A stretch of 64,000 nt of DNA from Orbicella franksi (lineage: Eukaryota). Positions 30,824 to 31,555 of the stretch are shown one piece after another. The stretch covers positions 7,688,001 to 7,752,000 of the forward strand of contig OZ116698.1 in assembly GCA_964199315.1 (NCBI GenBank), read 5' to 3'. Position 1 is the stretch's first letter. Each line of letters starts with the position of its first letter. Under the pieces are notes generated by a model. It saw nothing but the letters and a program-made list of their open reading frames with translations. It ran no database searches and was not told where the DNA came from. Position numbers and translations under genes: made by a program.

Positions 30824-31555
30824 CTGAGTTGAAGGCTGGTAAGGGGTCTCAGCGGAGCGTGCTGGTGCCATCAGGTACGCTTCAAAAATGCTGAGAAATG
30901 CCCACCGTTTCTAAAGGCTCTGCCAGCAAATCAGATGCCACACGTCCTCGCCGTAACCCTGGAAATGTAGCACTTAGTGCTACAGCTGAGTGGCAATGGT
31001 GAGAGGCGAGACTCCGGCGCCTTATTAACCGGAACTAAGGGAAAAAAAACCCTAACAGAAAATACACTGGTCCTCCAAGTCTGGGGGTTTAGCGTGGGGT
31101 TAACAACCCCACCTAGTAAAAATTATATTGTTACAGAAACACAGAAGCGCCAAACACACATCCGCTGTACTGTAGGAAGAGGTTCATCTGAACGTATGAC
31201 GCCGAGCAGGGAAAGCCAGCAGCAACGGGAACCTGCCCGACCGATCCTTCTTTCTCCAAGACAAAGAACAAATTAAGGAAAGAAAGTGGACATGGATCGG
31301 ACATATACTTAGGAGATCAAACACCTGCATAGCCCGACAAGCACTGGGCTGGAACCCCCAGGGAAGTAGACGGAGAGGAAGACCACGAAACACCTGGAAA
31401 AGAGACACAGAAAGGACCATCCAGTTAAAAGGCTACACCTGGAATCAGATTGAACAGATGGCCAGAGACAGAGGAGGGTGGAGGCGTTTTATCTGTGGCC
31501 TATGCTCCGAGACGGAGTAATAAAAGGCATCATCATCATCATCATCATCATCATC
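30824..31555 (+). mobile_element. Internally deleted (bipartite) non-autonomous RTE retroposon with TSD and (CAT)n tail
   Basis: TSD ATAGGCCTCATTT at 30811-30823 and 31556-31568. RTE-like 5' UTR (GGTCCTCCAAGTCTGGGGGTTTAGCGTGGGGTTAACAACCCC). The ORF start MTPSRESQ... at 31196 is joined out of frame to the RTE C-terminus EQIKERKWTWIGHILRR...GRPRNTW...GLCSETE* (31266-31520), then (CAT)n. Confidence 0.85.
30843..30995 (+). ncRNA. HDV-like self-cleaving ribozyme (predicted) at the RTE 5' end
   Basis: P2 TGCCAC 30936-41 / GTGGCA 30990-95. P3 ACG/CGT around L3 TCCTCGC (30945-51). P1.1 CC 30946-47 / GG 30961-62. P4 TGTAGCAC-TTA-GTGCTACA. J4/2 GCTGA (catalytic C 30986). P1 GGGGT 30843-47 / ACCCT 30956-60 with a G.U wobble at the cleavage site. 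Confidence 0.75.

Follow-up and report, generated by a model that had tools for sequence, protein, structure and literature searches.

Positions 30825-30995 (+ strand) of the window, the whole 64-kb stretch of Orbicella franksi DNA analyzed here, probably hold a copy of the 5′-terminal HDV-like ribozyme module of a family of RTE retrotransposons. Catalysis is predicted from the conserved fold, and the window copy itself appears to be crippled. We propose that read-through or host-driven RTE transcripts would fold into a nested double pseudoknot, in which the first 6-7 nt of the element would form P1 and a large three-way J1/2 domain would keep P1 beside P2. Self-scission 5′ of the first P1 nucleotide would then give the transposition RNA its exact 5′ end. 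According to an initial annotation of this DNA, a non-autonomous RTE copy begins with an HDV-like fold. This fold, inherited from the RTE family, is backed by covariation across lineages, and the P1 helix and the cleavage site are assigned differently here.

Putative ribozyme core and host element

Within 30825-30995, the elements follow the order P1-P2-P3-L3-P3′-P1′-P1.1-P4-J4/2-P2′ of the HDV-like nested double pseudoknot, all on the + strand. The 5′ strand of P2, UGCCAC (30936-30941), forms 6 bp with GUGGCA (30990-30995), where the module ends. P3 (ACG/CGU, 30942-30944 with 30952-30954) encloses L3, which reads UCCUCGC (30945-30951). It is followed by the 3′ strand of P1, AACCCU (30955-30960), and then by G30961 and G30962, which form P1.1 (CC/GG) with C30946 and C30947. 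The P4 hairpin has 8 bp in the MFE fold (30966-30973 with 30977-30984, loop UUA), and in J4/2, GCUGA (30985-30989), C30986 corresponds in position to C75, the catalytic base of HDV. Direct reading and a descriptor scan confirmed this catalytic core as first annotated, together with the CTCAGC...GCTGAG hairpin described within J1/2. The core of the window copy is identical to the subfamily consensus.

The descriptor search, which had been proposed as a check on the fold, covers P2, P3, L3, P1.1, P4 and J4/2 and was calibrated on dinucleotide-shuffled windows. In its loose form it gave 0.06 matches per shuffled window. With the strict form (P2 made up entirely of Watson-Crick pairs, a P4 of 6 bp or more, GG), none of 200 shuffles of the window matched, and the core was found. 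The sole other loose match in the window, at 15678-15757, has G.U pairs in P2, ACAAA as J4/2 and GA in P1.1, and lies in a C-rich repeat; it was judged a chance match. A degenerate core pattern run over viral contigs returned L004 and L005, which are GC-rich prokaryotic or phage coding sequence found at about the number expected by chance, and these were discarded.

At the Rfam gathering scores, no match was obtained in the window or in 20 further RTE loci. When hits were instead ranked by E-value, drz-Agam-2-2 (RF01788) matched the region best, with 16.7 bits and an E-value of 0.079 in a 901-nt search, which does not reach the gathering score of 38. The alignment sets ACGUCCUCGCCGUA, GG, P4 and GCUGA of the window against ACGUCCUCGUCGUA, GG, P4 and GCUAA of the model. 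The related copy L008 scored 15.9 bits with the same model.

The host is an RTE-type non-LTR element of 733 bp (30825-31557, + strand). It is flanked by the TSD AGGCCTCATTT at 30813-30823, an exact 11-bp repeat that recurs at 31558-31568; a single extra base, C30824, lies between the 5′ TSD and the element. Downstream of the module, the rest of the RTE 5′ UTR and the first ORF2 codons (30996-31262, + strand) were delimited by BLAST to L003, L006 and L008, by the translation of L006 and by alignment A10. An internal deletion with its junction at ~31262/31263 joins this part to the 3′ end of the element (31263-31557, + strand), which comprises the last ~85 codons of ORF2 with stops at 31518-23, a short 3′ UTR and a (CAT)10 tail (31528-31557). 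The ATG at 31196 is the probable start of ORF2. The ATG at 30996, which adjoins P2, was rejected as an ORF start: although in frame in L006, it is replaced by ACG in L038 and is not conserved in L053.

The C-terminal ORF2 peptide has 19 close protein relatives, several with DUF6451, and ~4,200 relatives in a representative library; homologues of this tail carry RVT_1 and DUF6451. The RTE character of the host is further seen in its full-length relatives L006 and L009, which have Exo_endo_phos, RVT_1 and DUF6451, and in the (CAT)n tails and 11-bp TSDs. L006 is nearly full-length (APE, RVT_1, DUF6451) with a few frameshifts, and L003 is a relative of the window copy with a smaller deletion. The window copy retains just the 5′ UTR and the last ~85 ORF2 codons, and no second copy of the element was found within the 64-kb window. 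The description of the element as a deleted, non-autonomous RTE is thus borne out by the TSD pair, the (CAT)10 tail, the deletion junction and the fuller relatives L006 and L003.

The gene context is roughly as annotated before. A rhodopsin-type GPCR (7tm_1) lies at 33345-37832 on the + strand, its first coding exon ~2.4 kb downstream of the RTE copy. The other neighbour, previously called C3, can be described from a weak MG4 match as a macroglobulin-domain gene (- strand, 21.5-26.5 kb), several kb from the RTE copy. Further along, an intronless 302-aa ORF (40475-41383, - strand) resembles p30, a subunit of RNase P/MRP, with PF01876 clusters and an atlas feature score of 0.98.

Related copies and compensatory changes

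Related copies were collected in three steps. Seven loci were fetched from ENA assemblies via spurious and real ORFs of the element, an alignment of the APE N-terminus yielded 80 RTE loci from metagenome contigs, and three further loci were added later. Searches with nhmmer and two covariance models showed that related RTEs of five lineages from public assemblies open with the 171-nt module, which precedes their ORF. Lineage A includes the window copy, L003, L006, L008, L011, the truncated L007 (on the same contig as L013) and L084, which has a 3′ deletion. Lineage B consists of L018 (identical to L026) and the partial L041, both CpG-decayed; lineage C of L038 and the partial L074; lineage D of L053; and lineage E of the decayed L091 and L092. 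The effective diversity is small, with about five lineages of which several are single decayed copies. In RTE lineages at 56-59% APE identity and in more distant ones, the HDV-like module was absent by nhmmer, both covariance models and the descriptor. For the 56-59% lineages, L019-L024 and other loci retrieved through APE have 600-2400 nt of upstream sequence in which no HDV-like module was found, Rfam included; their 5′ ends may be truncated or use something else.

A C in the position of the catalytic cytosine, followed by N-R-A, is present in J4/2 of all lineages. Lineages A-C are invariant for a GCUGA J4/2, and D and E share GCUAA with drz-Agam-2-2. The G at the position equivalent to A77, earlier listed as a deviation of this copy, is therefore not a copy defect but the form found in three lineages. 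P1.1 CC/GG is kept except in the decayed L018 and L091. L038 and L018 have a shortened P4, and L053 has none. The module of L053 (422-574 of that locus) combines a 7-bp P1 and a GCUAA J4/2 with the lack of P4, reading GG GUAAC GCUAA CAGCUG; it is a single copy, and a secondary deletion may explain it.

A check of covariation across genomic copies had been suggested in the initial annotation. We tested the full pseudoknotted structure on alignment A8 (MAFFT, seven sequences), where pairing holds in 97.2% of cells. Changes on both sides were counted for thirteen pairs, compared with 2.8±1.4 in shuffles (0/500 reach this number) and 0-1 when the partners are slid by 1-3 columns. P1, P2, P3, P4 and the J1/2 stems all contribute. 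Compensatory pairs on A8 include three of the six in P2 (G-C to U-A, C-G to U-A and A-U to G-C), one in P3 (C-G to U-A in L038), two in P4 and six in the J1/2 stems. The core of L053, which has no P4, was misaligned by MAFFT and was handled by hand and by covariance-model alignment; its P3 is GCC/GGC. Alignment A9, which is fitted to the model and contains twelve sequences, gave 27 both-side changes against 7.5±2.1; this alignment is biased in favour of the model and contains a 5′ segment of L007 that is not homologous.

The J1/2 peripheral domain (30835-30927, + strand) forms a three-way junction according to the RNAalifold consensus. Its closing stem a (30835-30841 with 30921-30927) is fully recoded in L053 as UGGAGCA/UGCUCCA. 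The long hairpin b (30844-30903) uses at its base the GGGG run, 30844-30847, that figured in the initial annotation, and the small hairpin c occupies 30907-30918. The same three-way architecture is present in single-sequence MFE folds of four lineages. A peripheral helix in J1/2 has a role in large HDV-like ribozymes (PMC4908430), and the conserved J1/2 fold observed here agrees with this.

Some further observations were made on the related loci. A second conserved block in the 5′ UTR, at ~31067-31145 of the window, is also present in L006, L018, L038 and L053 (alignment A10) and reads CUGGUCCUCCAGG...GGGGUUAACAACCCC...GUAAAAA...UUACAGAAAC. It can be aligned across four lineages, shows apparent compensatory changes in a GGGG/CCCC hairpin and is noncoding in L038, where a stop codon interrupts the frame; it is a candidate for a further structured RNA element. 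In L011 (2515-2535), the first 8 nt of the element are tandemly duplicated at the 5′ junction (AGGGTTGA AGGGTTGAAGG), a pattern resembling an end-to-end template jump made when the 5′ end of the RNA was reached. In the L008 contig, the histone 3′ stem-loop model (RF00032, gathering score 34) is matched on either side of the RTE copy, at 4163-4207 (30.4 bits) and 8254-8299 (35.5 bits).

P1, the predicted cleavage site and the window copy

P1 is assigned to the first six bases of the element, UGAGUU in the window copy (30825-30830, + strand), which pair with AACCCU at 30955-30960; the predicted cut lies 5′ of T30825. Among lineages with unrelated upstream flanks, homology begins at the T30825 column in every lineage, and in L006 and L003 the 11-bp TSD directly adjoins the first P1 base. 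Because the first P1 base coincides with the insertion and homology boundary and pairs with AACCCU, the cut is probably located at the first base of the element and not 18 nt inside it. A ribozyme that generates the 5′ end of the transposition RNA would be expected to cut there.

The composition of P1 varies among the copies. L084 and L018 have GGGGUU/AACCCU (G.U plus 5 bp), and L038 has GGGGUU/AACCCC (G-C plus 5 bp). In L008 and L011 (AGGGUU/AACCCU) the +1 pair is A-U, and in L006 and L003 (UGGGUU/AACCCU) it is U.U. The P1 of L053, GUGAGGC/GCCUCAU, is unrelated in sequence and perfect over 7 bp, including a G.U wobble; like the others, it is located 110-112 nt upstream of P2. The cleavage-site pair is G.U in L091 as in L084, L018 and L053, and U.U in the window copy as in L006 and L003; the window copy has no G.U wobble at this site. 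The initial annotation had placed cleavage 5′ of G30843 and had found this site to lie 12-19 nt inside the end defined by the TSD. The pairing on which it was based (G.U plus 4 bp) does exist in the window copy, but the relatives place P1 at 30825-30830, and the offset vanishes when P1 comprises the first six bases of the element.

Position 30827 is A in the window copy and G in every other copy, and this G30827A change breaks a G-C pair of P1. The remaining helix, UGAGUU/AACCCU, has an energy of +0.5 kcal/mol, compared with -6.3 to -10.1 kcal/mol in the other copies, and is not stable. P1 has thus been lost in the window copy because of G30827A together with the U at +1. Judging from these energies, the copy has most likely lost cleavage at the canonical site. 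It is a dead-on-arrival or decayed derivative with an internal deletion, its core intact and its P1 destroyed. A pairing at a second site (site B, GGGGU 30843-47) amounts to -6.5 kcal/mol, and the rival base of hairpin b to -4.7 kcal/mol. G30827A, being specific to the window copy, also weakens the earlier suggestion that this copy releases its own RNA or cleaves + strand transcripts of the locus: just the non-canonical site-B pairing is left, in competition with a conserved hairpin. As a crippled relic, the copy is unlikely to affect the neighbouring GPCR or macroglobulin-like gene.

Alternative readings and known systems

It seems quite unlikely that P1 is instead GGGGU (30843-47) paired with ACCCU (30956-60), with the cut 5′ of G30843 and 18 nt inside the element. 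This pairing is the only stable P1 left in the window copy, and in lineages A-C it is 97% paired, as good as the terminal P1; the two registers are told apart by L053, by the insertion boundaries and by the topology. In L053 the G30843-based pairing is absent, and in L038 one pair is lost, where a U-to-C change improves the competing pair at the base of hairpin b. Cutting at G30843 would remove 18 nt from the RNA, but these nucleotides are retained in all complete copies of all lineages, which start at the upstream site. In addition, hairpin b uses the G run as its conserved base, and the 5′ strand of stem a would fall in the leader upstream of the cut. A second G run able to pair with the same 3′ strand of P1 is kept in the window's subfamily. 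It is conceivable, though improbable, that this subfamily propagates with a non-G nucleotide at the cleavage site (U.U or A-U replacing G.U) and that the terminal P1 and the site-B/hairpin-b registers, which are mutually exclusive, constitute a conformational switch tuning or timing self-cleavage. Such a two-register switch would represent a naturally occurring regulatory version of the HDV fold.

The P1 of only 6 bp, the Rfam scores below gathering level and the +1 base of the window's subfamily, U or A and not the canonical G, speak against the ribozyme reading; HDV depends on its G1.U37 wobble to be fully active (PMC1874588). The non-canonical +1 base would also suit a non-catalytic 5′ UTR element that is HDV-like in shape and serves, for example, reverse-transcriptase binding or cap-independent translation. 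Roles in translation and protein binding have been proposed for retrotransposon HDV-like ribozymes too (PMC6765202), and the second conserved, possibly structured block further along the UTR points the same way. We nevertheless consider a purely non-catalytic element unlikely: residues required only for catalysis (the L3 sequence, P1.1 CC/GG, and the C and R-A of J4/2) are kept across lineages, and cleavage directly explains why the first P1 base is the insertion boundary. That an ordinary transposon 5′ UTR fits the HDV descriptor by chance is extremely unlikely. Although the loose descriptor has its background of chance matches, with an extra weak match in the window, and the Rfam score is below threshold, the strict core did not appear in any shuffle, compensatory changes occur across lineages in P1, P2, P3, P4 and the J1/2 stems, and the location at the 5′ end of the element is conserved.

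An HDV-like ribozyme at the 5′ end of the RTE would have well-known counterparts. HDV-like ribozymes are documented in RTE and baggins elements, R2 and L1Tc, with proposed functions in releasing the element from co-transcripts and in promoting translation (PMC6765202, PMC3774820, PMC4035085). Ribozymes of this kind at RTE 5′ ends have already been published, and the lineage described here adds a variant that lies below the Rfam gathering scores. It would thereby be one more retrotransposon lineage in which an HDV-like ribozyme appears to set the 5′ end of the RNA, a proposal drawn here from sequence comparison. Relatives of this RTE lineage are present in several ENA and JGI assemblies, and alignment A8 with the covariance models R1 and R2 could be used to annotate many copies in the genome. 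The copies also document a conserved three-way J1/2, natural G/A variation at the position equivalent to A77, and a variant without P4.

Among the closest known systems, drz-Agam-2 (RF01788) likewise occupies the 5′ end of an RTE-clade element, in Anopheles gambiae. Both have a 6-bp P2 abutting P3, GG for P1.1, a P4 hairpin, a 5-nt J4/2 of the form GCU(G/A)A and a large structured insertion in J1/2 (PMC4908430). The P3-L3-P3 segment is nearly identical in drz-Agam-2-2, ACGUCCUCG(C/U)CGU, the comparison string for the window being ACGUCCUCG[C/U]CGUA; drz-Agam-2-2 is a validated RTE ribozyme, and its likeness to the core in the window is at a sub-threshold score. The module described here differs from drz-Agam-2 in its P1 of 6 bp and not 7, in the U or A at +1 in the window's subfamily, in a ~105-nt three-way J1/2 with its own conserved sequence, and in the G at the A77-equivalent position in three lineages.

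The R2 elements of Drosophila, Bombyx and others also carry a 5′-terminal double-pseudoknot ribozyme, which cuts the RNA from its co-transcript at or near the element boundary (PMC3774820, PMC6765202), as is predicted for the RTE module. R2, in contrast, is site-specific in 28S rDNA and co-transcribed by Pol I, whereas the RTE copies lie at varied sites with 11-bp TSDs, and the R2 ribozymes have no sequence similarity to the RTE module. Genomic HDV shares with it the nested double-pseudoknot topology, the L3 sequence UCCUCGC, P1.1 CC/GG and a J4/2 in which C is followed by purine-A. HDV differs in having a 7-bp P1 with an obligatory G1.U37, a short J1/2 and GCGAA as J4/2 (PMC1874588), whereas the RTE module combines a 6-bp P1 with a very large J1/2 and a variable cleavage-site pair.
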